Positions 46,366 through 54,947 of a stretch of DNA of 64,000 nucleotides are shown piece by piece (position 1 is the first letter of the stretch; each line of letters opens with the position of its first letter). The translations under genes were made by a program, and so were the position numbers. The stretch is from sequence record PV231354.1, one strand, 5' to 3'. The notes under the pieces were generated by a model, which saw nothing but the letters and a program-made list of their open reading frames with translations, was not told the origin of the DNA and did no database searches.

Positions 46366-47034
46366 ATGTCGACCGACATCACCATGCCGCCTGACACGAC
46401 GATCTTCGCGGACGTCAAGCTCAATGGCGGCGCCGGCGCGCCCGTCGATCTGGCCGATGGCGAACTCTACATCGACGAGGCTGGACGCAAGCTCTATGTC
46501 GAGACCGTGGTCGGCGTCCAGCCGATCCCGCTCGACGTCGGCTACATCCCGCGCCGGCCCAGCGGCACGCCGCTCGACCACGTGGTCACCAAGACCGCCA
46601 CCGGCTCCGAGTGGGGGCCGCTCCAGGGCGGCGCGGGCGGCTCTCCGTTCGACGCGGCTGAGTTCCGCGTGCCGGGCATCGCGCCCACGGGCCTGGACAC
46701 GGTCGTTCTGCCGGGCGCGTCCGGTGGCATGGCTCTCTTCGAGATGCCGCTCCAGGACGTCCTCCTGAGCGTGCGTGTACACGCCTCCGCCGGCGTCGGC
46801 GCGGTAACCCTGGGACTCTACCCGTTCAACGGCTCCCTGGGCTCGGAAATCTTCGCCCAGACCCTGACGTTCACCGCGCCCGAGACCCAACTGGTGCCCG
46901 TCTCCCTGGCCTTGACGCCGGGGGTGTACGCCTGGGTGTGGACGGGGGCGTCCTCCGTGACTCTGGACGCGGTCAAGGGCTCCCTGCCCTGGGCGACGAG
47001 CGAGCAGGTCCACCCCGTGGCGATGAAGTTCTAA
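46366..47034 (+). CDS. Fibre-associated protein
   Basis: LADGELYIDEAGRKLY adaptor motif shared with its neighbours. Confidence 0.7.
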   Translation: MSTDITMPPDTTIFADVKLNGGAGAPVDLADGELYIDEAGRKLYVETVVGVQPIPLDVGYIPRRPSGTPLDHVVTKTATGSEWGPLQGGAGGSPFDAAEFRVPGIAPTGLDTVVLPGASGGMALFEMPLQDVLLSVRVHASAGVGAVTLGLYPFNGSLGSEIFAQTLTFTAPETQLVPVSLALTPGVYAWVWTGASSVTLDAVKGSLPWATSEQVHPVAMKF

Positions 47035-47810
47035 TGGCTATCCAGAACCCCCACTCCACCACGCCGGGCGTCATGCCCCACCTGACGCCGGGCGAGATCG
47101 GCGTCAACAAGGCCGATGACATCCTCTGGTTCCGGTCCGAGGGCCGCCGCGTGCCGATCATCCTGAGCGATCTGGATCGGGCGCCGCCGCTCGACGGCCT
47201 GACCGGCGCGCCGCTGACCCTGGAAGGTGGCCAGCCGATCTGGAACGCGCATCTGGCCCCGTCCTCCGTGGTCAATGGGCAGGTCAAGGTCGATCTGCCG
47301 CCGGCGACGGGCCTGCACGCCATGCCCAGCGTCCTGCTGCAAGGCCTGGGAGCCGATCGCGCCCTGGCGGCCAACGATCTGGACCTCTCGCCCTTCTACG
47401 TCCGGTCCGACTCCATCACCCTGACCCAGTTGGCGTTCAGCGTCCGCTCGGCGGGCGCGCCGGCCATGCGGGTGGGGATCGTCGACAGCTTCGGCGTGGT
47501 CCAGGCCGACATTCTGGTCGCCGCGCCCGTGGTGGGCGCCAACGTGGTCAACCTCTCGCCGGTGCTGACGCTCCAGCGCGGCGTCTACCGCACGATCCTG
47601 GCAACCACCGGCGCGGTGACGATCGGGGTGGTCACGGGCGCGCGCATGGAGCAGGGCTGGGACATCATCGGGGACACGCCCTCCTTCATCCACGGCTACA
47701 GCGGCTCGAAGAACACCGGCGGGGGGATCGGCAGTTTGCCGGGCCTGACCGCGCGGCGCTCGGGCGTGCCGGGTCAGGATCATTCGGTCCTGATGCGCTG
47801 GACGGCGTAG
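47034..47810 (+). CDS. Fibre-associated protein
   Basis: LTPGEIGVNKADDILWF adaptor motif; TAATG coupling. Confidence 0.7.
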   Translation: MAIQNPHSTTPGVMPHLTPGEIGVNKADDILWFRSEGRRVPIILSDLDRAPPLDGLTGAPLTLEGGQPIWNAHLAPSSVVNGQVKVDLPPATGLHAMPSVLLQGLGADRALAANDLDLSPFYVRSDSITLTQLAFSVRSAGAPAMRVGIVDSFGVVQADILVAAPVVGANVVNLSPVLTLQRGVYRTILATTGAVTIGVVTGARMEQGWDIIGDTPSFIHGYSGSKNTGGGIGSLPGLTARRSGVPGQDHSVLMRWTA

Positions 47811-47982
47811 TGGGGAGAGCCGGGTGGGGCTTTGTATCGCTGGGGGAGCGAGGGACGGGCCGCTCCCCGGCGGCCCACCCGCTCTTTATAGACGGCCCTT
47901 TCCCGGCCCGCAAGACGTGAATCTTGACATGGTGGAAGATCGGGGTTAACCTGCGCGCTCATCTGGAGTTTCGAGCGCCACC

Positions 47983-48246
47983 ATGGCTGAGCTTGTCCGC
48001 ATCTATCACCCTGAGACGAACGAGCCGTTCGACGTGATCCCGTCGACCGCCGAACGTCTGCGCCTGGGTGATGGTCCCGACGGGCTGGTCTGGCTCTCGC
48101 AGCCCTTCGAGCGCGTCGCTGTCGAAGCCGCGCCGGAAGCCCCCAAGGGGCGAGGTCGTAAGCGCGTCAGCGCGCCCGTCTCGGAAGAAGCCGAAGACGA
48201 CGGGTGGCGTGACGTGCCGACCGAGGAAGATCGCGAAGCCGCGTAA
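47983..48246 (+). CDS. Hypothetical acidic protein
   Basis: Downstream of late promoter 47914; codon bias. Confidence 0.75.
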   Translation: MAELVRIYHPETNEPFDVIPSTAERLRLGDGPDGLVWLSQPFERVAVEAAPEAPKGRGRKRVSAPVSEEAEDDGWRDVPTEEDREAA

Positions 48247-48290
48247 GGCGCTTCGTCTTCCACTCTGCTGAAATTCGGTCTCAGTCCCAT

Positions 48291-48366
48291 GTCGGTCTAG
48301 CTCATGGGGTAGAGCGGCGGTCTCCAAAACCGCGCGTGGCAGGTTCGAGTCCTGCGTCCGGCGCCA
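48291..48366 (+). tRNA. tRNA-Trp(CCA)
   Basis: Cloverleaf; loop CT-CCA-AA; encoded CCA end. Confidence 0.9.
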
Positions 48367-48370
48367 TTTC

Positions 48371-48445
48371 GCATCCGTAGTATATAGGTGATTACAGCGC
48401 GTTGCCAACGCGTAGAGTCGGGTTCGAGTCCCGACGGATGCTCCA
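48371..48445 (+). tRNA. tRNA-Gly(GCC)
   Basis: Loop TT-GCC-AA; U73 CCA. Confidence 0.9.
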
Positions 48446-48449
48446 TTTC

Positions 48450-48523
48450 GCGGGTATAGCTCAAAGGGAGAGTTGCTGCCTTCCAAGCAGAAGATGCGAG
48501 TTCGAGCCTCGCTATCCGCTCCA
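48450..48523 (+). tRNA. tRNA-Gly(TCC)
   Basis: Loop CT-TCC-AA; U73 CCA. Confidence 0.9.
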
Positions 48524-48831
48524 ACCTCGTGGTGAGGTGAGAACGCCCTCCTCATGCACCGCTTCGGCGGTAAAGTAGGCTCCAGCCGAAGAGATGCGGG
48601 ACCAGGGGACCCCGCCACCACGAACGAAGTGCGCCCCAGGTACGCCTCTGACCGAGAAAGCCCGCTGGCCGTGGGTGAAGTGTATGGTCAAGCGTCTGGG
48701 TCCCCGTCCGCCAGGACCGGCGAAGGCCATATGCGCCGAATTCCTGGACCGGATCGTAGGAGGGGAGCGTTGGCGCCGGCCCAGCAGGGAAGGGTGAAGA
48801 GCCCAGCCGGCAATTTTCTTCAACAACAAGC

Positions 48832-48860
48832 TTGACAGCCGTCGAGTTTCGTGAGAGCCT
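48832..48860 (+). promoter_or_regulatory. Promoter P1 (Glu/Asp tRNA unit)
   Basis: TTGACA-17-GAGCCT; closely similar to P2. Confidence 0.7.
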
Positions 48861-48870
48861 CCTCAACATT

Positions 48871-48933
48871 ATGACGCACCTCCTCACCCGTTACGAACGC
48901 GAGGCCACCGGCCTCGATACCACCACCGCCTAA
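48871..48933 (+). CDS. Putative leader peptide 1 (MTHLLTRYEREATGLDTTTA)
   Basis: Starts just after the predicted TSS; contains GAA, GAG and GAT codons; followed by hairpins, then tRNA-Glu and tRNA-Asp. Confidence 0.5.
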   Translation: MTHLLTRYEREATGLDTTTA

Positions 48934-48965
48934 AAGCGGTTTTGGTCCGAGGCCTCTTGTGATGT

Positions 48966-49043
48966 GGCCCGGTCGTCTAGCGGTTTGCAGGATTCCTGAC
49001 TTTCAATCAGGAGAGCGGAGTTCGAGTCTCCGTCGGGCTTCCA
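48966..49043 (+). tRNA. tRNA-Glu(TTC)
   Basis: Loop CT-TTC-AA; CCA end. Confidence 0.9.
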
Positions 49044-49068
49044 CACCCCCAACTCATCTCTGAGCTTT

Positions 49069-49143
49069 GGTGCCGTCGTATATGGGTTATTATCACCGGC
49101 TGTCTCCCGGTGGAAACGGGTTCGAGTCCCGTCGGCATCGCCA
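49069..49143 (+). tRNA. tRNA-Asp(GTC)
   Basis: Loop CT-GTC-TC; G73 CCA. Confidence 0.9.
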
Positions 49144-49191
49144 GCCCTCGCAGCAAATCCAGGTTCCAGCGCGGCTGTTCCGCGCGCCTGC

Positions 49192-49428
49192 ATGCACGAG
49201 GCTACCATGTTTTTCGATCCCTCCTCGCAGTCGAGCGACGCGCTCCTGCGCCACGTCTCCACCCAATCTCCGTATGCGGAAGCGGCTCGCACCGAGTTGC
49301 TGTCCCGAGGCCTCGTTCCGCTCCTGACGCGGTTCAACGGCTGGCGCCTCGCCCCGAGCGCGCCGTTTCCGCAGCACCTCATCCCGCGCCCCGATCCGCT
49401 CGCGAAGTACACGTGGCGGGCGGGATGA
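49192..49428 (+). CDS. Hypothetical protein inside the tRNA array (start may be 49207)
   Basis: Fills the gap between tRNA-Asp and P2. Confidence 0.55.
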   Translation: MHEATMFFDPSSQSSDALLRHVSTQSPYAEAARTELLSRGLVPLLTRFNGWRLAPSAPFPQHLIPRPDPLAKYTWRAG

Positions 49429-49447
49429 AAAATATTCACCACGACGC

Positions 49448-49476
49448 TTGACATCCGTCGGGAGTTGTGAGAGCTT
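49448..49476 (+). promoter_or_regulatory. Promoter P2 (Pro/Thr/Lys/Leu/His/Ala/Ser tRNA operon)
   Basis: TTGACA-17-GAGCTT. Confidence 0.75.
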
Positions 49477-49569
49477 ATGGACTGTCACGGATCACGACAC
49501 TCCTCGGAGTGCAAAAGCGTGATCCTTCGTTTTTCACGGCCGCCAGCGGGTGGCCAGTCGAGAGTTGTC

Positions 49570-49707
49570 ATGTTCGCCTTGTCGCATCTCAGCCTGAGCA
49601 CGAAAGCCGCCTCCCCGGCGACGCTTTCGCTTGCCCTGCTGGCGACGGCCGCGAAGCCCTCGACCAAGCCGACCACCTCGGCCTCGCACTCGACGGAGAC
49701 CCACTAG
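49570..49707 (+). CDS. Attenuator leader peptide 2 (MFALSHLSLSTKAASPATLSLALLATAAKPSTKPTTSASHSTETH)
   Basis: Codons 3-42 encode only A, L, S, H, T, K or P, the seven amino acids of the downstream tRNAs. Confidence 0.85.
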   Translation: MFALSHLSLSTKAASPATLSLALLATAAKPSTKPTTSASHSTETH

Positions 49708-49809
49708 GGCTCTCGTCTCGGGTGCAGGCCTTGGAGCCGCACCCGCTACCTACATCCTGTAGACCTAGCGCAAGGCGGCTCCTCACCAGGGAGACCGCCT
49801 TTTCTTTTT
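49680..49809 (+). terminator. Attenuator 2: alternative hairpins and intrinsic terminator
   Basis: Terminator AAGGCGGCTCC/GGAG(A)CCGCCTT + TTCTTTTT (49772-49809); antiterminator GGAGCCGC (49733-40) pairs with GCGGCTCC (49775-82). Confidence 0.85.
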
Positions 49810-49821
49810 CGCGTTGATCAT

Positions 49822-49897
49822 CGGGGTGTAGCTCAGTCGGTAGAGCGCTCGGTTCGGGACCGAGAGGCCGTGGGTTCGAGTCCCGCCACCCAGACCA
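49822..49897 (+). tRNA. tRNA-Pro(CGG)
   Basis: Loop TT-CGG-GA; CCA end. Confidence 0.9.
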
Positions 49898-49904
49898 ACG
49901 CCAT

Positions 49905-49981
49905 CGGGATGTAGCTCAGTTTGGGAGAGCGCGCGGCTGGGGGCCGCGAGGCCGCAGGTTCAAGTCCTGCCACCCCGACCA
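49905..49981 (+). tRNA. tRNA-Pro(GGG)
   Basis: Loop CT-GGG-GG; CCA end. Confidence 0.9.
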
Positions 49982-49986
49982 ACAAC

Positions 49987-50059
49987 GCTGTTGCGCGTGG
50001 CTTCGCGCCCACCCCTTGGTATGGGGCGGTAGAAGGTTCAATTCCTTCCAGCAGCACCA
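49987..50059 (+). tRNA. tRNA-Thr(GGT)
   Basis: Loop TT-GGT-AT; G1:C72, C2:G71; atypical D arm. Confidence 0.8.
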
Positions 50060-50064
50060 ACAAC

Positions 50065-50134
50065 GCCGATGCCTCTGGGAGGACGCGCCTTTCGTAAGGG
50101 TGCGAGGTGGGTTCAATCCCCACTTTCGGCTCCA
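50065..50134 (+). tRNA. tRNA-Thr(CGT), short D arm
   Basis: Loop TT-CGT-AA; CCTC-TGG-GAGG D hairpin. Confidence 0.8.
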
Positions 50135-50189
50135 TCAAACAGCCTGCGGGCTATATCGGAGATCAAGTTTCATAGCCTCCAGGCTATAT

Positions 50190-50276
50190 GGATGTGTCAC
50201 CTCAGTGGCGAGAGGAACGGGCTCTTAATCCGTCAGCGCAAGCTCACCGTGGGTTCGAGTCCCACCACATCCTCCA
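50190..50276 (+). tRNA. tRNA-Lys(CTT) with long variable arm
   Basis: Loop CT-CTT-AA; AGC-GCAA-GCT extra arm. Confidence 0.85.
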
Positions 50277-50281
50277 ACAAT

Positions 50282-50371
50282 GCACAAGTGACCCGAGCGG
50301 CGAAGGGCGTCGACTTTTAATCGACTAGGCGTCCAGCCTCACCGAGGGTTCGAGTCCCTCCTTGTGCTCCA
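50282..50371 (+). tRNA. tRNA-Lys(TTT) with long variable arm
   Basis: Loop CT-TTT-AA; AGGC-GTCCA-GCCT extra arm. Confidence 0.85.
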
Positions 50372-50374
50372 TGT

Positions 50375-50461
50375 GCGAATGTGGCGGAACTGGTAGACGC
50401 GCCGGCCTCAGGTGCCGGTGCCCTTCGGGGCGTGTGGGTTCGAGTCCCACCTTTCGTACCA
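50375..50461 (+). tRNA. tRNA-Leu(CAG)
   Basis: Class II; loop CT-CAG-GT. Confidence 0.9.
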
Positions 50462-50468
50462 ACGACAT

Positions 50469-50556
50469 GCCTTGCTGGCGGAAGTGGTAGACGCACTGTT
50501 CTCAAAAAGCAGGCCGGGCGACCGGGCTCTGGGTTCGATCCCCAGGTGAGGCACCA
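50469..50556 (+). tRNA. tRNA-Leu(CAA)
   Basis: Class II; loop CT-CAA-AA. Confidence 0.9.
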
Positions 50557-50563
50557 AGACTGA

Positions 50564-50651
50564 TGCGAAGTGGCGGAAACTGGTAGACGCACCGGCATGA
50601 GAGGCCGGCGCCCTTCGGGGCGTGAGGGTTCGAGTCCCTTCTTCGCGACCA
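50564..50651 (+). tRNA. tRNA-Leu(GAG)
   Basis: Class II; loop AT-GAG-AG. Confidence 0.9.
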
Positions 50652-50731
50652 ATGTCCCGATCGGGAAGATTCCAGGCGGCGCGGCGCTCGCGACACCCGG
50701 ATTTTCCCGATCGGGAAGACGACGAGATTAT

Positions 50732-50802
50732 GCTGATCGCCGCTGGGCGGGGAGCGGGTTGTGTCCCCGCTAGGCACGGTTCGATCCCGTGGGTCAGTAC
50801 CA
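50732..50802 (+). tRNA. tRNA-His(GTG), short D arm, A73, no G-1
   Basis: Loop TT-GTG-TC; A73 without G-1 matches the known alphaproteobacterial tRNA-His type. Confidence 0.8.
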
Positions 50803-50807
50803 GATAC

Positions 50808-50878
50808 GGGGTATGCGCAGGGCGCAGGCATCCTTTGCAAGGAAGTCGGGGTGGGTTCGAGTCCCACATACTCCACCA
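50808..50878 (+). tRNA. tRNA-Ala(TGC)
   Basis: G3:U70 pair, A73; loop TT-TGC-AA. Confidence 0.85.
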
Positions 50879-50882
50879 ACAT

Positions 50883-50972
50883 GGAAGGTCAACCGGACAG
50901 GCGCGCCGGGACTGCCTCGAAAGCAGATCGCACTCTCCGGGGTGTGGGGATCGAGACCTCGGCCTTCCTCCA
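50883..50972 (+). tRNA. tRNA-Ser(CGA)
   Basis: Class II; loop CT-CGA-AA. Confidence 0.85.
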
Positions 50973-50976
50973 ATAT

Positions 50977-51066
50977 GGTGAGCGAACGGGACAGGCGTGC
51001 CCGGTCCGCCTGGAAAGCGCGACGCACTCTCCGGGGTGTGGGATTCGAGTTCTCCGCTCACCGCCA
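50977..51066 (+). tRNA. tRNA-Ser(GGA)
   Basis: Class II; loop CT-GGA-AA; G73. Confidence 0.9.
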
Positions 51067-51070
51067 ACAG

Positions 51071-51160
51071 GGTAGGCGAACCGGACAGGCGCGCCGGCGC
51101 CGTTTGCTAAACGAGCGGCACTCTCCGGGGTGTGGGATTCAAGCTCTCCGCCTACCGCCA
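51071..51160 (+). tRNA. tRNA-Ser(GCT)
   Basis: Class II; loop TT-GCT-AA; G73. Confidence 0.9.
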
Positions 51161-51436
51161 TTTTGATGTTGACGCCGGCCAGCACCGATGTCATACGTCA
51201 CGACAGAGCCAACGCCCTCGGCCGGGTTGGTGGATGTGCCGGTTGCATCGCGCCCCGTCGAGCCCTAGTAGCTCTTGCCGTGGAGTTTTCCGCCTCCCTC
51301 CCAGACAAGGAGGCGGACCCCTACATCGCGATCCAGTGATCGTCGGCGACGGGCGCCGTCAGAGCCCCTTGCGCGCGGGAACGCTGCGGAGGGGATCGTC
51401 CCGACCACATTTTTCGACCCACGTTAACTTTTCTTC

Positions 51437-51465
51437 TTGACCTTCCCGAAAACGTAGTGTAGCTT
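51437..51465 (+). promoter_or_regulatory. Promoter P3 (Tyr/Phe/Val/Ile/Gln/Asn/Arg tRNA operon)
   Basis: TTGACC-17-TAGCTT; ATG 8 nt downstream, so a probably leaderless mRNA. Confidence 0.75.
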
Positions 51466-51472
51466 TCCCGTC

Positions 51473-51568
51473 ATGAGCAAGTCGTACCGTCAATTCGTGC
51501 AGATTCAGGTCGTCCGGAATTTCCGGGCGGGCCGTTCGCGCATGGATGATGGCGGGACCTTTATCTAG
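51473..51568 (+). CDS. Attenuator leader peptide 3 (MSKSYRQFVQIQVVRNFRAGRSRMDDGGTFI)
   Basis: Codons 5-18 (TAC CGT CAA TTC GTG CAG ATT CAG GTC GTC CGG AAT TTC CGG) are all read by downstream tRNAs. Confidence 0.85.
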   Translation: MSKSYRQFVQIQVVRNFRAGRSRMDDGGTFI

Positions 51569-51634
51569 GTCCAGACACCTCAACCCAATTCGCGAAAGGC
51601 CCGCCTGGACACCCAGGCGGGCCTTTTTCTTTTT
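51512..51634 (+). terminator. Attenuator 3: 1:2 hairpin, antiterminator and intrinsic terminator
   Basis: Terminator AAAGGCCCGCCTGG-ACAC-CCAGGCGGGCCTTT + TTCTTTTT (51595-51634); leader segment 51523-51540 pairs with 51591-51608. Confidence 0.9.
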
Positions 51635-51691
51635 CCGTTTCGCTGATCCGCAGGAGATCGCAGATGAACAACGGGGGCTAGTCCTCCACAT

Positions 51692-51776
51692 GGATGCTTA
51701 AAGCTGGAGGGCTCCAGCCGGGGGCTGTAAACCCCCTCTCTTCGGAGGAGTGGTTCGATCCCACAAGCATCCACCA
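51692..51776 (+). tRNA. tRNA-Tyr(GTA), atypical D arm
   Basis: Loop CT-GTA-AA; class II arm; GCTGGAG/CTCCAGC extended D stem. Confidence 0.85.
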
Positions 51777-51781
51777 ATCAT

Positions 51782-51857
51782 GGACTCGTAGCTCAGCAGG
51801 TAGAGCGCCGGCTTGAAACCCCGGAGGTCGGAGGTTCGATTCCTCCCGTTTCCACCA
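51782..51857 (+). tRNA. tRNA-Phe(GAA)
   Basis: Loop TT-GAA-AC. Confidence 0.9.
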
Positions 51858-51862
51858 ACAAC

Positions 51863-51938
51863 GCCCGATGAGCCAGATGGGAAGGCACCGCTTTGACATG
51901 GCGGCATTGAGAAGGTTCGATTCCTTCATCAGGCACCA
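51863..51938 (+). tRNA. tRNA-Val(GAC)
   Basis: Loop TT-GAC-AT. Confidence 0.9.
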
Positions 51939-51943
51939 ACCAC

Positions 51944-52019
51944 GCAAGTGTAGCTCAGTTGGTAGAGCAGCGGACCGATAATCCGCCCGTCCCTGGTTCG
52001 AGTCCAGGCATTTGCACCA
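51944..52019 (+). tRNA. tRNA-Ile(GAT), C33
   Basis: Loop CC-GAT-AA. Confidence 0.85.
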
Positions 52020-52026
52020 TTTCTGA

Positions 52027-52102
52027 TGTGGCATAGCTCAGGGGTCAGAGCGCGCGCTTGATAAGCGTGAGGTCGGTGGTTCGAGACCACCTGTCACTAC
52101 CA
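52027..52102 (+). tRNA. tRNA-Ile(GAT)
   Basis: Loop TT-GAT-AA. Confidence 0.9.
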
Positions 52103-52136
52103 ATTCCCAGGCCCGGTGGAGATGCGCCGGTTCTGT

Positions 52137-52210
52137 AGGCGATTAGCTCAATGGTAGAGCAGGGGTGCCACATACCTCGGTCGTAGGTTCGATTCCTACA
52201 TCGCCCACCA
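52137..52210 (+). tRNA. tRNA-Val(CAC), G32/C33
   Basis: Loop GC-CAC-AT; A73. Confidence 0.8.
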
Positions 52211-52216
52211 ACATGT

Positions 52217-52290
52217 TGAGGGTTCGTCTAACGGTAGGACGCCTGGGTCTGGTCCAGGTAATCTAGGTTCGAGTCCTAGCCCCTCATCCA
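52217..52290 (+). tRNA. tRNA-Gln(CTG)
   Basis: Loop GT-CTG-GT. Confidence 0.9.
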
Positions 52291-52296
52291 AGTTGT

Positions 52297-52370
52297 TCTC
52301 GGGTCGTCTAATGGTAAGACATCTGGTTTTGGTCCAGAGGATTGGGGTTCGATTCCTTGGCCGAGAGCCA
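52297..52370 (+). tRNA. tRNA-Gln(TTG)
   Basis: Loop TT-TTG-GT; G73. Confidence 0.9.
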
Positions 52371-52387
52371 ACTGCTTTAGAGTTCAT

Positions 52388-52462
52388 TCCAGTCAATGCA
52401 CAAGGTGTGCAGCGGCACTGTTAATGCCTGTGAGCCCGGTTCGATTCCGGGGTCTGGAGCCA
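52388..52462 (+). tRNA. tRNA-Asn(GTT)
   Basis: Loop CT-GTT-AA; G73. Confidence 0.9.
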
Positions 52463-52487
52463 ACACGCCGGCCAAGGCCGGTCATGC

Positions 52488-52570
52488 GCCCTGGTAACCG
52501 AGGGGGATTACGAATCCCTTAGTCGTAGCAGGAGTTGAAAAGGGTGGTTCGAATCCACTCCAGGGTGCCA
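52488..52570 (+). tRNA. tRNA-Arg(ACG)-like RNA lacking a D arm
   Basis: Acceptor GCCCTGG/CCAGGGT, 7-nt link, loop TT-ACG-AA, long variable region, normal T arm and CCA. Confidence 0.65.
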
Positions 52571-52577
52571 AATCTAT

Positions 52578-52660
52578 AGCGCGCAGGCCGATCAGGATCA
52601 TCGTCAGGCGTCGCCCTCCGAAGGCGAAGAGGCCCGGTTCGAGTCCGGGGCGCGCTGCCA
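52578..52660 (+). tRNA. tRNA-Arg(CCG), enlarged D region
   Basis: Loop CT-CCG-AA; G73. Confidence 0.8.
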
Positions 52661-52663
52661 ACT

Positions 52664-52741
52664 GCGCGGGTAGCTCAACGGAACCAGAGCAGCCGTCTTC
52701 TACACGGTGGGTTGGGGGTTCGAGTCCCTCCCCGTGCGCCA
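52664..52741 (+). tRNA. tRNA-Arg(TCT)
   Basis: Loop CT-TCT-AC; G73. Confidence 0.9.
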
Positions 52742-53332
52742 AAACTTGACGGGCAATGCCGAATCGCCCAACTTCGACCCTGGCTCTCGGTGGGCCACGA
52801 TTGCACGCCGTCGGTGCCCTGGCCGTACACCCAGGGAGCAGCCCGGCGGCGTTCCAACACGGTTTCTGGACGATCTTCGAACGCGGCTTGCCGTGGAGGG
52901 GTGCTGGATAGGGCCGAGGTAGGAGGAACCATCGAGCATCTCCTAATCCCGGCCTGGGCCTCCTGGGGGCTCCGCTGGGTCGATCAGGGCCTGACCCGAC
53001 CCCGGAGATGCGCCGACCTAGATCACCCAGGATCGCTGGGTCGGTTGAAAGGGTCTGAAATTTTCTGGCTCCTATGTGTTGACACGCATTTCGGAGCCGG
53101 CTACAACCCTCCTCGTAGAGCGGCGCTGGGGCCTGAAGGCCCCAATCGTTGAGCCTCTGCGTTGTCGTCAGAAACGGCCCGCCGGCATCCCGCCGCGCGG
53201 GCCGTTTCGTCATGGGCGTCATGCGACCTTGAGTCCACCGTGGGTAGTGTCGTGAATCTTGACTTTCGACCACCTTTCCGGTAGCTTCCCCTTCATCACC
53301 AACGCTCATAAGTCGGGGACTAGAGAGCCGAT

Positions 53333-53731
53333 ATGTCGCAAGACCACACCGGCTCCGCAACGCAGAGCCAAGAACACATCTTTCGTAAGCTGGATGAGCT
53401 TGGCGCAATGCACATGCGTACCCGCGAGGACATGGCCGAAGTCAAGGAGAAGGTGAAGACCATCGCCTCCTCTCAGGAGCGCTTTGAGCGCGACGTTTGG
53501 CGCGAGATGGACATTCGCCACGCCGAGACCAAGGAGCAACTGGCCGCCATCAAGAATCAAACCGCCGATCGGATCGACGAGATCGAGGCCAAGGTGAACA
53601 CCATTCGCGAGGAGCGGATCGCCGAAAAAGCCCAGTGGCGTGGCCCCGAGAAGGTCATTGCCGGCATCGTCGCCCTGGCGGGCGGCGTCACCGCGATCGG
53701 CGTTCTCTGGAGCATCTTCAAACCCCACTAA
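53333..53731 (+). CDS. Coiled-coil protein with C-terminal TM helix (possibly holin-like)
   Basis: Amphipathic helices, then VIAGIVALAGGVTAIGVLWSIF. Confidence 0.6.
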   Translation: MSQDHTGSATQSQEHIFRKLDELGAMHMRTREDMAEVKEKVKTIASSQERFERDVWREMDIRHAETKEQLAAIKNQTADRIDEIEAKVNTIREERIAEKAQWRGPEKVIAGIVALAGGVTAIGVLWSIFKPH

Positions 53732-53836
53732 GCCTACAGTCAAGCTTGTTCGCCTGCGGCCAGAAGTCGCGGTTCTTGACACCCCCCAGCGGCCCGAGCT
53801 AACCATAGGGTCATCTGTTCCTGGGGAGTTTCCTAG

Positions 53837-54058
53837 ATGGCTGCTGCGCTTACCCTCGTCTCCTGCGAGACGAACTTTTCGACCACCACGGACACCGATC
53901 CGGACGCGGCGCACGAGCGCCTCATTCTGGTCCTCAACACCGCCTCAGAAGCGGGCCTTGGTGAAATGACGTTGGAAGTCAAAGAAGAGATCGAGGCCCT
54001 GCTCAAGCAGGCGTCTATCGAACTCTCGAACTGCCGGATCGTGGGGGGAGTTCCTTAA
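53837..54058 (+). CDS. Hypothetical protein
   Basis: GGAG SD; promoter at 53766. Confidence 0.6.
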   Translation: MAAALTLVSCETNFSTTTDTDPDAAHERLILVLNTASEAGLGEMTLEVKEEIEALLKQASIELSNCRIVGGVP

Positions 54059-54080
54059 TCGCCATCCCAGAGGGAGCGAC

Positions 54081-54947
54081 GTGTCCGAGTCTTCCGAATT
54101 CAACCCGCTCGACCAATCCCAGTTCCCTCCTCGCCTCACCAAGGCTGCTGCGCGTCAGGCGCGGCGCCAGGAGCGCAGCCAGAAAAAGGACCCCACGGCG
54201 AACAAGCCCAACTACAAGGCGCTCGAAGCCAAGACTGAACGCCAGAAGCGCTACATCCAGGCGCTGAAGGCCGGCGAGAGCGCCATCGCCATCGGCGGGG
54301 CCGGCACGGGGAAGACCTACATCCCGTCCCGGCTCTTCGCCAAGAAGCTGATCGAAGGCAAGACCGAACGCCTGATCATCGCCCGCGTCACCGCCTCGCG
54401 GGCCAAGCACGCCCTGGGCTTCCTGCCCGGCAAGCTCGAAGCCAAGCTGGCCCCGTGGCTGGTGCCGGTGATCGAGGGCGTCAAGGCGGAAATGAACGCC
54501 CAGACCTATACGCAGTTGCAGGAGGCCGGCAAGATCGAGTTCGCCTCCTTCGAGCACATGCGCGGCCGGACCTTCGGCGAGTGCTGCGTCCTGCTGGACG
54601 AGGCCCAGAACGCCGACTACAAGGACCTGAAGATGGTCCTGACCCGTTGGGGTGAGAACGCCCAGTACGCGGTCACCGGCGACGTCGACCAGATCGACGT
54701 GGACGACTCCGGGCTGGACACGGTCATCGACATCGTCGAGGCCAACGACATCCCCATCCACGTCATCGAGTTCACCGACGAAGACGTCGTGCGCTCGCCC
54801 ATGGCCAAGGCCTGGGTCAAGGCCTTCTCCGCCCACGAGGGCAAGGACGGCCGGCCCCGGCGCTTCCACCGCCCGGCTGTCAGGAATCTTGACGCTTTGC
54901 CGGCGTTCATCGATAATGGCCATGTCACGAAACCCGTGGCATCGTGA
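54081..54947 (+). CDS. phoH: PhoH-like ATPase
   Basis: GGAGTGKT Walker A; LGFLPG; FEHMRGRTF; LLDEAQN; TGDVDQID; DVVRSP. Confidence 0.95.
   Translation: MSESSEFNPLDQSQFPPRLTKAAARQARRQERSQKKDPTANKPNYKALEAKTERQKRYIQALKAGESAIAIGGAGTGKTYIPSRLFAKKLIEGKTERLIIARVTASRAKHALGFLPGKLEAKLAPWLVPVIEGVKAEMNAQTYTQLQEAGKIEFASFEHMRGRTFGECCVLLDEAQNADYKDLKMVLTRWGENAQYAVTGDVDQIDVDDSGLDTVIDIVEANDIPIHVIEFTDEDVVRSPMAKAWVKAFSAHEGKDGRPRRFHRPAVRNLDALPAFIDNGHVTKPVAS

Follow-up and report, generated by a model that had tools for sequence, protein, structure and literature searches.

Leader-peptide attenuation as the likely control of two tRNA operons in Caulobacter phage RBC8

The tRNA genes of Caulobacter phage RBC8 (CcrRogue-like), analyzed here in a 64-kb window of its DNA, fall into four blocks, and it is likely that two of these, blocks 3 and 4, are independent operons that are each controlled by ribosome-mediated (leader-peptide) transcription attenuation. 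The tRNAs of both blocks would probably be made only when ribosomes run short of them, with each leader ORF acting as a test strip for the codons that are served by the tRNAs encoded downstream. This model infers that the leaders are translated and that transcription terminates at the T-runs.

ARAGORN identified 24 tRNA genes between positions 48291 and 52741, all on the + strand, of which 19 reached the Rfam gathering score. A T-loop scan with individual folding added seven further cloverleaf-like genes with encoded CCA ends, which gives the 31 tRNA or tRNA-like genes that the initial annotation had counted. Judged by sequence, these seven of the 31 genes are non-canonical and tRNA-like, and putative as working tRNAs:

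50063-50138: added tRNA-like gene, Thr-CGT
50881-51160: three added tRNA-like genes, Ser (CGA, GGA, GCT)
51692-51778: added tRNA-like gene, Tyr-GTA
52487-52570: added tRNA-like gene, Arg-ACG
52575-52663: added tRNA-like gene, Arg-CCG

The ARAGORN call 'Ile-aat' at 52388 is better described as Asn-GTT (anticodon loop CUGUUAA). As previously noted, the four blocks carry disjoint amino-acid sets, with zero overlap between any of them, and only Met and Cys are without a gene in the array:

48291..48523, +: block 1, tRNA-Trp(CCA), Gly(GCC), Gly(TCC)
48966..49143, +: block 2, tRNA-Glu(TTC), Asp(GTC)
49822..51160, +: block 3, 14 genes: Pro CGG, Pro GGG, Thr GGT, Thr CGT, Lys CTT, Lys TTT, Leu CAG, Leu CAA, Leu GAG, His GTG, Ala TGC, Ser CGA, Ser GGA, Ser GCT
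51692..52741, +: block 4, 12 genes: Tyr GTA, Phe GAA, Val GAC, Ile GAT (two genes), Val CAC, Gln CTG, Gln TTG, Asn GTT, Arg ACG, Arg CCG, Arg TCT

The attenuation mechanism is strongly supported for block 4, whose leader (L4) and further elements of the unit are as follows:

51437..51442, +: -35 hexamer TTGACC of the L4 promoter
51473..51568, +: leader ORF L4 (unannotated), MSKSYRQFVQIQVVRNFRAGRSRMDDGGTFI, then stop codon
51522..51540, +: segment 2 (CCGGGCGGGCCGUUCGCG), partner of segment 1 (the control codons) or of segment 3
51554..51573, +: hairpin P2, with the stop codon in its loop
51588..51637, +: segments 3 and 4, intrinsic terminator (stem 51594-51627, then UCUUUUUCCG)
51643..51681, +: small hairpin GAUC-CGCAGGA-GAUC bearing a Shine-Dalgarno sequence, then mini-ORF MNNGG with stop codon (51664-51681), both placed between the L4 terminator and tRNA-Tyr
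53166..53210, +: terminator-like hairpin (AAACGGCCCGC..GCGGGCCGUUUCGUC), read from the sequence, putative end of the block-4 unit; another TTGAC promoter follows at ~53255

The -35 hexamer precedes the ATG by exactly 30 nt (17-nt spacer, -10 hexamer, 7 nt), and therefore a leaderless L4 mRNA is predicted, with the transcript starting at the A of the AUG. This distance is 30 nt in 11 of 12 relatives and 31 nt in CcrSC, with diverged sequence in between; leaderless mRNAs are translated normally in the host (PMC4117421). The control core comprises codons 5-18 (51485-51526) and encodes Tyr, Arg, Gln, Phe, Val, Ile and Asn only. Without delay in these codons the ribosome would reach the stop codon and segment 1 would re-pair with segment 2, so that the 3:4 terminator could form and RNA polymerase would halt ~55 nt ahead of tRNA-Tyr, the first tRNA of the block. 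A shortage in any of the seven aminoacyl-tRNA families would instead stall the ribosome in the core and mask segment 1, whereupon 2:3 pairing would preclude the terminator and the 12 tRNA genes would be transcribed.

Consistent with this, the minimum-energy fold of L4 contains the 1:2 pairing and the terminator, while masking of segment 1 yielded the antiterminator (-56.9 kcal/mol). The 1:2, 2:3 and 3:4 pairings are mutually exclusive and show compensatory changes among 12 leaders, which represent five Caulobacter and Brevundimonas phage lineages. Pairing is 95.5% in the terminated state, with 8 pairs changed on both sides, and 95.1% in the antiterminator, with 4 such pairs; the antiterminator covariation score was matched by 0 of 500 shuffles. 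CcrSC and CcrBL9, for example, share an identical G-to-A substitution in segments 2 and 4, and in segment 3 both carry the C-to-U substitution that matches it. The P2 hairpin with the stop codon in its loop is present in 12/12 L4 leaders, built from at least five different stem sequences, and in a megablast search with a 5.4-kb query the L4 leader was the sole part matched in Bertelyvirus genomes. In equilibrium folding with a single 28-nt ribosome footprint, most sequences gave the antiterminator at only a short stretch of L4 codons, and Colossus and CcrPW at no codon position; the L4 model therefore leans on kinetics, like the trp model.

A passive architecture could be proposed, in which the terminators close the preceding units, transcription from the promoters is constitutive and the short ORFs arose by coincidence and are not translated. 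The annotators of phiCbK listed the hairpins merely as rho-independent terminators, neither L2 (the leader of block 2) nor L4 is annotated as a gene, and the leader model is derived from sequence. We nevertheless consider this reading very improbable, as each promoter is situated downstream of the preceding block and upstream of the terminator, which would then end the very unit that it belongs to. The fixed spacing from -35 to ATG and the covariation of segment 2 with both of its partners speak against it as well, as does an extreme match of residue alphabets, kept through divergence in five lineages, that is described below.

For block 3, attenuation is moderately supported and would reach the same outcome through a five-segment switch in its leader, L3:

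49448..49453, +: L3 promoter, -35 hexamer TTGACA, with a structured 5' UTR (~88 nt) after it
49570..49707, +: leader ORF L3 (RBC8_083, annotated as hypothetical), MFALSHLSLSTKAASPATLSLALLATAAKPSTKPTTSASHSTETH, then stop codon
49680..49745, +: switch segments 1-3, from ribosome-mask folding
49774..49809, +: intrinsic terminator, GGCGGCUCC..GGGAGACCGCC and UUUUCUUUUU, also annotated as a terminator in phiCbK

Segment 1 consists of the final ~9 codons, the stop codon is placed in the 1:2 loop, segment 2 lies past it and segment 3 (GGAGCCGCACCC) is the alternative partner of the terminator's 5' arm; the terminator ends 12 nt before tRNA-Pro, the first tRNA of the block. A ribosome at the end of the ORF would mask segment 1, allowing 2:3 pairing and formation of the terminator (4:5), while a ribosome stalled anywhere in codons 2-33 would leave 1:2 intact and segment 3 free to sequester the terminator's 5' arm. 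The claim of the initial annotation that stalling triggers read-through is supported for block 4 by alternative pairings and compensatory changes; for block 3, ribosome-mask folding gives the same direction, but the switch helices are invariant among 6 aligned relatives and therefore provide no covariation evidence, with compensatory pair changes confined to the stop hairpin and H3. Folding gave no clean L3 switch in the Brevundimonas phages, and a clear U-tract was not found in the L3 region of Colossusvirus or Bertelyvirus.

The two leaders are also distinguished by their composition. Of the 44 L3 residues, 42 fall within the block-3 alphabet {P,T,K,L,H,A,S} and 1 within that of block 4, while the L4 core has 14/14 residues in the block-4 alphabet and none in that of block 3 (binomial P = 1.4e-13 for L3 and 8.7e-8 for the L4 core). 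In composition the leaders of blocks 3 and 4 thus exclude each other (Fisher P=2.4e-10). In none of the six frames of the window is there another run in the block-4 alphabet as long as the L4 core (14 vs 9 for the next best), and the L3 run is likewise the longest in the block-3 alphabet (40 vs 19). In nine distinct L4 cores, drawn from five lineages, 131/134 residues are within the alphabet; 13 of 16 alternative residues also fall inside it (P=5.5e-5), among them radical exchanges like F/N, V/R and N/V/F. Among 15 L3 leaders, one 3-codon insertion included, 84-95% of residues are in the alphabet, the foreign ones being a conserved Phe at position 2-3 and, in some phages, Asn or Tyr at position 7. 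In Bertelyvirus, tRNA-Trp has been relocated to the end of block 3, and only Bertelyvirus leaders have a Trp codon in L3. What these sequences conserve is the alphabet and not the peptide: the leader peptides diverge while remaining inside it. At the level of codons, the leaders match 14/14 and 10/11 anticodons of the isoacceptors, which is not above the expectation from peptide and codon usage (P=0.13 and 0.24); an AGA codon for tRNA-Arg(TCT) is absent, and six GCC codons are unreadable by tRNA-Ala(UGC) under standard wobble.

This pattern makes it hardly conceivable that L3, and perhaps also L2 and L4, are genes for small functional proteins whose composition reflects protein function, for example as low-complexity or membrane peptides. 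Many genomes do list L3 as a hypothetical protein, and phiCbK-like phages share it with high conservation; across genera, however, the peptide is poorly conserved with chemically radical substitutions while the alphabet is kept. Its conservation is at the nucleotide level (97% identity among phages that are ~85% identical over the whole region) and extends beyond the stop codon, and a protein search matched close relatives only (five phiCbK-like proteins), none with a Pfam domain. Since much of each leader is constrained as RNA structure and many tRNAs of the array are non-canonical, the leaders might alternatively be RNA-only elements that serve processing, stability or folding of tRNA precursors (access of RNase P or RNase E, chaperoning of unusual tRNAs), with the frames as by-products of nucleotide constraints. 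The L2 hairpin, which adjoins tRNA-Glu and is without a U-tract in several genera, would suit such a role. Yet this leaves unexplained why divergent sequences retain an open frame whose start codon keeps a set spacing to the promoter, whose stop codon falls in the loop of a hairpin and whose amino-acid alphabet is that of the tRNAs encoded downstream, and we give it very little credence.

Separate sensing of every block had been proposed initially. Block 3 and block 4 are each equipped with a separate promoter, a matching ORF and a terminator, but blocks 1 and 2 fall short, and 'separately sensed' therefore applies to two of the four blocks. Block 1 is without sensing: neither a leader ORF nor a terminator is present ahead of it in RBC8, and its upstream neighbor is an 87-aa protein gene or other CDSs. 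In RBC8 this neighbor is:

47983..48246, +: RBC8_081, conserved 87-aa protein gene directly 5' of block 1

A promoter-like TTGACA (47924-47929) precedes RBC8_081, and the CcrColossus homologue of this gene, gp094, is also found upstream of block 1; RBC8_081 is no leader peptide. Block 2 does have a leader:

48832..48837, +: -35 hexamer TTGACA of the L2 promoter
48871..48933, +: leader ORF L2, MTHLLTRYEREATGLDTTTA, then stop codon
48910..48954, +: long hairpin, putative regulatory element (a terminator in the phiCbK record)

The L2 ATG lies ~3 nt downstream of the predicted start site, a geometry repeated in relatives, and every lineage retains one Asp codon together with one or more Glu codons, most lineages having two. 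The final 7 codons form the 5' arm of the hairpin, which has the stop codon in its apical loop, a weak U-rich tail and its end 11 nt before tRNA-Glu; Bertelyvirus is among the genera in which the U-tract is missing. L2 may thus be described as a related and conserved leaderless mini-ORF, with its logic of control assigned to neither direction. The L2 ORF enters the 5' arm of a terminator-like hairpin, so a ribosome at its end must melt the hairpin, and a stall on the Glu codons would mask a competing upstream segment. Both would suit an inverse logic, whereby ribosomes that keep up with RNA polymerase suppress the hairpins, a stall leads to termination and tRNAs are produced only during active translation, as a coupling or quality check and not a demand sensor. 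As a general account we deem this unlikely, as it fits L2 only: the L4 control codons are the 5' arm of the anti-antiterminator, such that masking them gives the antiterminator, and a ribosome at the end of the L3 ORF gives the terminator.

Demand-sensing attenuation of blocks 3 and 4 is reminiscent of the proteobacterial leader-peptide attenuators of the trp, his, multivalent ilvGMEDA and thr biosynthetic operons, which likewise comprise a promoter, a short ORF rich in regulatory codons, exclusive 1:2, 2:3 and 3:4 pairings and an intrinsic terminator that is read through upon stalling. L4 matches the classic four-segment attenuator segment for segment, while the extra segments of L3 resemble the his leader. 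The phage leaders differ in being phage-encoded, in the predicted leaderless mRNA of L4, in sampling seven amino acids each (three in ilv, two in thr) and in having tRNA genes instead of enzymes as cargo, so that the loop closes directly on decoding capacity. In E. coli, the pheST (pheM) leader-peptide attenuator controls an aminoacyl-tRNA synthetase operon; it similarly regulates a component of the translation apparatus by stalling on cognate codons, but its target is a synthetase, it senses one amino acid and it is cellular. The E. coli tRNA-Phe gene pheV was rejected as a leader-controlled precedent, its promoter abutting the tRNA. T-box riboswitches also couple the state of a specific tRNA to terminator read-through upstream of translation-related genes, though they bind uncharged tRNA directly and need no ribosome, recognition relying on the specifier codon and T-box sequence; the leaders of the tRNA array matched neither T-box nor any other riboswitch family.

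Phage tRNA arrays have been proposed to compensate for codon usage or for host tRNA loss, the latter in a counter-defense role. Such accounts concern the same genes and the same presumed benefit, namely tRNA supply during infection, but treat the tRNAs as simply expressed, whereas supply here appears to be feedback-regulated per amino-acid group. For phiCbK, codon supply was proposed as the role of the tRNAs, and leaders or attenuation are not mentioned in its genome paper (Gill et al. 2012, PMC3556154). We found no earlier description of leader-peptide attenuation for tRNA genes in the literature, and this type of cargo appears to be new.

In both operons newly made tRNA would relieve the stall, and the loop would therefore be self-limiting. 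The sensor would also fire on amino-acid starvation, which it could not distinguish from tRNA loss and in which extra tRNA would give no help. The tRNA depletion to which it responds could stem from phage codon demand, host tRNA decay or anticodon nucleases. That the purpose is an inducible counter to anticodon nucleases is pure conjecture, and the sequence would fit such a counter and a simple homeostasis of tRNA supply alike.

By sequence comparison, the query region matched Caulobacter phage RBC8 (PV231354.1) at 100% identity, with the same coordinates, and CcrRogue at 99.8%; both are phiCbK-like siphophages of the subfamily Dolichocephalovirinae. ARAGORN placed 24 tRNA genes at 48291-52741, all on the + strand, and missed 7 of the 31 genes of the array; these seven (Thr-CGT, three Ser, Tyr, Arg-ACG and Arg-CCG), all cloverleaf-like and ending in an encoded CCA, were recovered by a T-loop motif scan and folding of the gaps. 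The count of 31 tRNA or tRNA-like genes in the initial annotation was thereby confirmed, as was their division into four blocks with disjoint amino-acid sets: {Trp, Gly}, {Glu, Asp}, {Pro, Thr, Lys, Leu, His, Ala, Ser} and {Tyr, Phe, Val, Ile, Gln, Asn, Arg}. The Rfam gathering score was reached by 19 tRNA genes of the array, and the gene at 52388 that ARAGORN called Ile-aat has the anticodon loop of Asn (GTT). Several genes are unusual, the long variable arms of the Lys and Arg tRNAs being one example, and the seven added genes are therefore more safely called "tRNA-like". Long variable arms, which in bacteria are normally reserved for Leu, Ser and Tyr tRNAs, occur in both Lys tRNAs (87-90 nt; 50190-50371) and in Arg-ACG and Arg-CCG (84-89 nt; 52487-52663), while two Thr genes (49984-50138) have odd D-arms.

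Across the whole array (48291-52741), the partition roughly tracks the middle codon base: the NCN amino acids Ser, Pro, Thr and Ala are all in block 3, block 4 holds the NUN amino acids Phe, Ile and Val together with the NAN amino acids Tyr, Gln and Asn, the GAN amino acids Asp and Glu make up block 2, and the NGN amino acids Trp and Gly make up block 1. We also observed a direct repeat pair, UCCCGAUCGGGAAGA, at 50652-50722 (+), each copy with the palindrome CCCGATCGGG; the copies flank a G+C-rich spacer of ~35 nt between tRNA-Leu(GAG) and tRNA-His, and Brevundimonas phage Bajun has a comparable pair (GTTCCCGATCGGGATCA) in its own tRNA array (locus L012, 3940-4010).

Upstream of each of blocks 2, 3 and 4 we found a promoter of its own and a short ORF (L2, L3 and L4; 20, 45 and 31 codons, respectively). 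Blocks 3 and 4 additionally have a G+C-rich hairpin with a T-run directly 5' of their first tRNA gene, so that a predicted intrinsic terminator separates ORF from genes for L4 and, in RBC8, for L3. The elements are as follows.

Promoter and leader elements of blocks 2 to 4 (window positions)
48832, 49448 and 51437: -35 hexamers of the TTGACA type before blocks 2, 3 and 4, respectively
49570-49707, + strand: leader ORF L3, reading MFALSHLSLSTKAASPATLSLALLATAAKPSTKPTTSASHSTETH
49774-49809: predicted intrinsic terminator of L3
51473-51568, + strand: leader ORF L4, reading MSKSYRQFVQIQVVRNFRAGRSRMDDGGTFI
51594-51637: predicted terminator of L4, a 15-bp stem with a T-run

A generic promoter scan missed the leader promoters because their -10 regions are not TATAAT-like. 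The RBC8 record lists L3 as "hypothetical protein" RBC8_083 and leaves the L2 and L4 ORFs unannotated. Within the L3 5' UTR of ~88 nt (49483-49569, +), a hairpin, GGAUCACG...CGUGAUCC, is conserved; RBC8 has a further ATG upstream in the same frame, at 49477, which overlaps the -10 region and is unlikely to be part of the transcript.

The codon content of L3 and L4 follows the amino-acid set of the block behind each leader (its "alphabet"). In L3, 42 of the 44 residues after Met fall within {P,T,K,L,H,A,S}, and codons 5-18 of L4, its core, are drawn only from {Y,R,Q,F,V,I,N} (14/14), with all seven amino acids present. When all six frames of the 64 kb window were scored, the L3 ORF held the longest run in the block-3 alphabet (40 versus 19 for the next) and the L4 core the longest in the block-4 alphabet (14 versus 9). 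Binomial P values were 8.7e-8 for the L4 core and 1.4e-13 for L3, at background frequencies of 0.31 and 0.43. The proposal that the two compositions are mutually exclusive beyond chance stood (Fisher P=2.4e-10 between the leaders). Both leaders are thus enriched in codons for the downstream amino acids; in L2 the enrichment is weak, with just 3 of 19 codons in the downstream set. A cognate leader codon exists for every block-3 anticodon and for 10 of the 11 block-4 anticodons; as independent evidence we discarded this isoacceptor-level match, for which simulation with the codon usage of the window gave P=0.13 and 0.24. The L4 core includes four rare A/T-ending codons (GC3 0.71 versus 0.90), which may tune sensitivity or simply serve the pairings described below.

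To see how far these features extend, we compared regions from Shapirovirus, Poindextervirus, BL57, Colossusvirus, Bertelyvirus and two Brevundimonas phage groups. By megablast, the L4 leader with its terminator (51467-51635) was 79% identical in Bertelyvirus jumbo phages, and nothing else of the 5.4 kb query matched them; a more sensitive search found the L4 leader in 49 phage records, eight of them Brevundimonas phages. Once unannotated Phe-, Tyr- and Arg-like genes were counted, the amino-acid sets of blocks 3 and 4 were identical in every lineage, even where 5.5 kb of protein genes lies between the two blocks. Variation in the block-4 set, sought for a covariation test, was absent, the same seven amino acids being found in all lineages. 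The L4 peptides themselves diverge (e.g. YRQFVRQIQFVRVNR, YRNNVRQIRVRQFN and YRQNVQNIRVVRFNR), and yet 131 of 134 core residues across lineages lie within the alphabet, as do 13 of 16 alternative core residues (P=5.5e-5), among them chemically radical exchanges. The L3 leaders (n=15, five lineages) were 84-95% in-alphabet, those of Colossus, Bajun, Kikimora and Bertelyvirus being hardly alignable to RBC8 L3, and a three-codon insertion (Ala-Ala-Thr) within the phiCbK group also stays in the alphabet. The alphabets of L3 and L4 are hence kept in five lineages. A separate observation concerns the final block-4 gene, which is tRNA-Arg(TCT) in all relatives and carries a one-base anticodon change to TCC, read as Gly, in phiCbK (L004 5914-5991, equivalent to window 52664-52741); this change would place a Gly tRNA behind a leader whose core has no Gly.

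One shift of a tRNA between blocks was found. In three Bertelyviruses block 3 ends with tRNA-Trp, and in RB23, the only Bertelyvirus whose upstream region was read, a lone tRNA-Gly replaces block 1. The Bertelyvirus L3, MTRIHTTL(T/P)TAKPASTGALTLASWPASSKPLLRHSAVLA (RB23 and CcrBL9, the two read), has a Trp codon in its sensing part, and no Trp codon was present in the L3 of the four lineages with Trp in block 1. The shift and the codon agree with the predicted direction, as a single event for which the chance of a W at this place is estimated at ~0.1.

The control logic could be followed furthest in L4. In 11 of 12 relatives 30 nt separate the -35 hexamer from the ATG, and in the other 31 nt, despite diverged intervening sequence. 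With 17 nt of spacer, a -10 element of 6 nt and a further 7 nt in this interval, transcription should begin at the A of the AUG, and the host has 375 leaderless mRNAs that are translated as well as others (PMC4117421). We divided the leader into four segments, of which segment 1 comprises the control codons, segment 2 can pair with 1 or 3, and 3:4 forms the terminator. The minimum-energy fold of the full leader consists of a long hairpin, a small stop-codon hairpin and the terminator, the long hairpin having the control codons as its 5' arm and segment 2 (CCGGGCGGGCCGUUCGCG plus the "RSRMDDGG" codons) as its 3' arm. Segment 2 is also complementary to the terminator 5' arm at 17 of 18 positions. 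In RBC8 the calculated energies were -36.7 (1:2), -52.8 (antiterminator) and -31.1 kcal/mol (terminator); the unmasked optimum was 1:2 plus terminator (-79.5), and with segment 1 masked it was the antiterminator (-56.9).

These mutually exclusive pairings (1:2, 2:3 and 3:4) show compensatory changes. In a 12-sequence alignment, the terminated state was 95.5% paired with 8 pairs changed on both sides, and the antiterminator helix 95.1% paired with 4 such pairs; both pair counts were far above slid controls, and 0 of 500 shuffles reached either covariation score. CcrSC and CcrBL9, for example, carry GGACGGGCC in segments 2 and 4 and GGCCCGUCC in segment 3. The stop codon sits in a local hairpin loop in 12 of 12 L4 leaders, built from at least five unrelated stem sequences. 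L4 would accordingly follow a trp-type scheme, in which no stall or no translation leads to termination and a stall in the core leads to read-through. With a single 28-nt footprint, equilibrium folding gave the antiterminator at only a few codon positions, and at none in Colossus and CcrPW; as long as segment 4 is still to be transcribed, nearly every state has segments 2 and 3 paired. Given this narrow equilibrium window and the early 3:2 pairing, the folding models imply that the decision must be kinetic, as in classical systems.

Between the L4 terminator and tRNA-Tyr (51643-51681, +) we noted a hairpin, GAUC-CGCAGGA-GAUC, with a strong Shine-Dalgarno sequence, followed by a mini-ORF, MNNGG*. 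The latter is kept as MNNGG* in BL57, Colossus and CcrPW and reads MTGGD* in Kikimora and Bambus and MTGN* in RB23; in phiCbK, Ccr5 and Magneto the Shine-Dalgarno hairpin is kept and the ATG is lost. On read-through transcripts, this element might serve as a second checkpoint or as a site for loading ribosomes.

For L3, ribosome-mask folding of the RBC8 leader yielded a five-segment switch, the last two segments (4:5) forming the terminator. Segment 1, the last ~9 codons, would pair with segment 2 past the stop codon, leaving the stop in the loop and freeing segment 3 (GGAGCCGC) to sequester the terminator 5' arm (GCGGCUCC). A ribosome at codons 34-stop would mask segment 1, so that 2:3 (GGGUGC:GCACCC) forms and the terminator with it. 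A stall anywhere in codons 2-33 would therefore give read-through, a range that fits the whole-ORF alphabet of L3, as opposed to a short core. Among six phiCbK-like phages the L3 leader is 97% identical, versus ~85% for the region, and the switch helices are invariant and so uninformative on covariation, compensatory changes being confined to the stop-codon hairpin and a hairpin named H3. Bertelyvirus has analogous repeated GGGUGC/GCACCC elements, the U-tract of the L3 terminator is weak or absent in Bertelyvirus and Colossus, and global folding of the Brevundimonas phage L3 gave no clean two-state picture. On these models we regard an L3 attenuation switch as probable.

The two remaining blocks differ from this pattern. 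L2 (MTHLLTRYEREATGLDTTTA) is kept as a leaderless mini-ORF in all lineages, always with Arg-Glu and Arg/Leu-Asp-Thr, and mostly with two Glu and one Asp (one of each in RB23). A long hairpin, which has the stop codon in its apical loop, takes its 5' arm from the last seven codons of L2, and its 3' arm stops 8-11 nt short of tRNA-Glu. The hairpin tail is U-rich in phiCbK-like phages, where the phiCbK record annotates a terminator; Bertelyvirus and the Brevundimonas phages have no such U-rich tail. CGAGGCC, an upstream sequence that contains the second Glu codon, is able to compete for the 5' arm. From this layout, translation of the putative peptide must influence the hairpin, which a stall may open or close and which may act in termination or in 5' processing. 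Block 1 is without a leader and is preceded by a conserved protein gene or other CDSs. The idea of separately sensed blocks in the initial annotation thus held in part: alphabet leaders and terminators, with covariation in L4, speak for blocks 3 and 4, the missing leader speaks against block 1, and block 2 is unclear, which leaves two of the four blocks convincingly "sensed".

Several further elements lie in or around the arrays. The Rfam "skipping-rope" RNA motif (RF02924), for which we know of no function, matched at 48527-48623 (+) with 45.8 bits (gathering score 36.7), beginning 4 nt past tRNA-Gly(TCC) at the end of block 1. In RB23, a GOLLD-RNA-like match (RF02032; L002 1829-2246, -; 104 bits, E=2e-26, under the gathering score of 150) falls in the 1.4 kb of non-coding DNA that separates block 3 from block 4 in the Bertelyvirus tRNA region. 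Weak matches to the tmRNA model in Kikimora and Bambus (L015 1783-1914 and L016 1274-1405; 32 bits, E ~4e-9, gathering score 47) are located between the block-3 Ser tRNA genes. The array also has conserved, translation-related neighbor genes: in Colossus, CcrPW and Brevundimonas phages the L4 promoter is immediately preceded by a gene for peptide deformylase, and in the relatives for which the sequence past block 4 was retrieved, a PhoH-like ATPase is encoded there. The RBC8 gene at the PhoH-like position (54081-54947) is annotated as a hypothetical protein only.

As judged from its sequence, L4 shows all the testable features that define leader-peptide transcription attenuators. It would work like the multivalent ilv and thr leaders, from which it differs in its tRNA gene cargo, seven amino acids, leaderless mRNA and viral setting. 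For the alternative of a T-box, defined by a specifier loop and the conserved T-box sequence, we searched 46500-54500 and five related loci with Rfam models; neither T-box nor other riboswitch families gave a match at E<=1. The E. coli tRNA-Phe gene pheV, considered as a leader-peptide precedent, was dropped, as its promoter abuts the tRNA without a leader. Leader-peptide attenuation has been a paradigm for 50 years, confined to the biosynthesis of amino acids and to a few synthetase genes, and tRNA arrays of phages are usually described as supplements that are expressed passively. Full-text searches of the open-access literature returned no report of attenuation of tRNA genes in phages, and the phiCbK genome paper treats the tRNAs solely as codon supplements and does not mention a leader or attenuation.

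Searches for L4 motifs beyond the known phages returned chance matches only for a two-part motif in IMG/VR, known isolates only for a three-part motif in IMG/VR, and chance matches only for the three-part motif in metagenomes and 185,579 bacterial and archaeal genomes; L3, searched as a protein, matched phiCbK-like relatives only. A prototype that scores the longest run of a cluster's amino-acid set upstream of tRNA clusters recovered every Dolichocephalovirinae leader, and matching leader alphabet to downstream anticodon set suggests itself as a search rule for other tRNA-rich phages.

Taken together, we lean towards the view that these leaders are the first ribosome-mediated attenuators with tRNA cargo: closed homeostatic loops, kept across the Dolichocephalovirinae, in which a seven-amino-acid test strip gates exactly those tRNA families, in which leader and tRNA set co-evolve (Trp in Bertelyvirus), and which would replace only the limiting families, for example after cleavage by an anticodon nuclease. 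Since aminoacyl-tRNA availability is what the leaders would read, such a sensor is blind to cause and cannot tell tRNA cleavage from amino-acid starvation, and defense against anticodon nucleases is one of several possible purposes. The supply of the array appears to be regulated by the very quantity to be restored, ribosome speed on cognate codons, with 14 codons integrating seven amino acids in one sensor, and attenuation would explain the conserved order and grouping of the tRNA genes in these arrays. If true, this would extend leader-peptide attenuation to tRNA genes and to viruses. The leaders would then be compact reporters of which tRNA families become short, and when, and the debated question of whether phage tRNAs answer depletion during infection would become directly testable.
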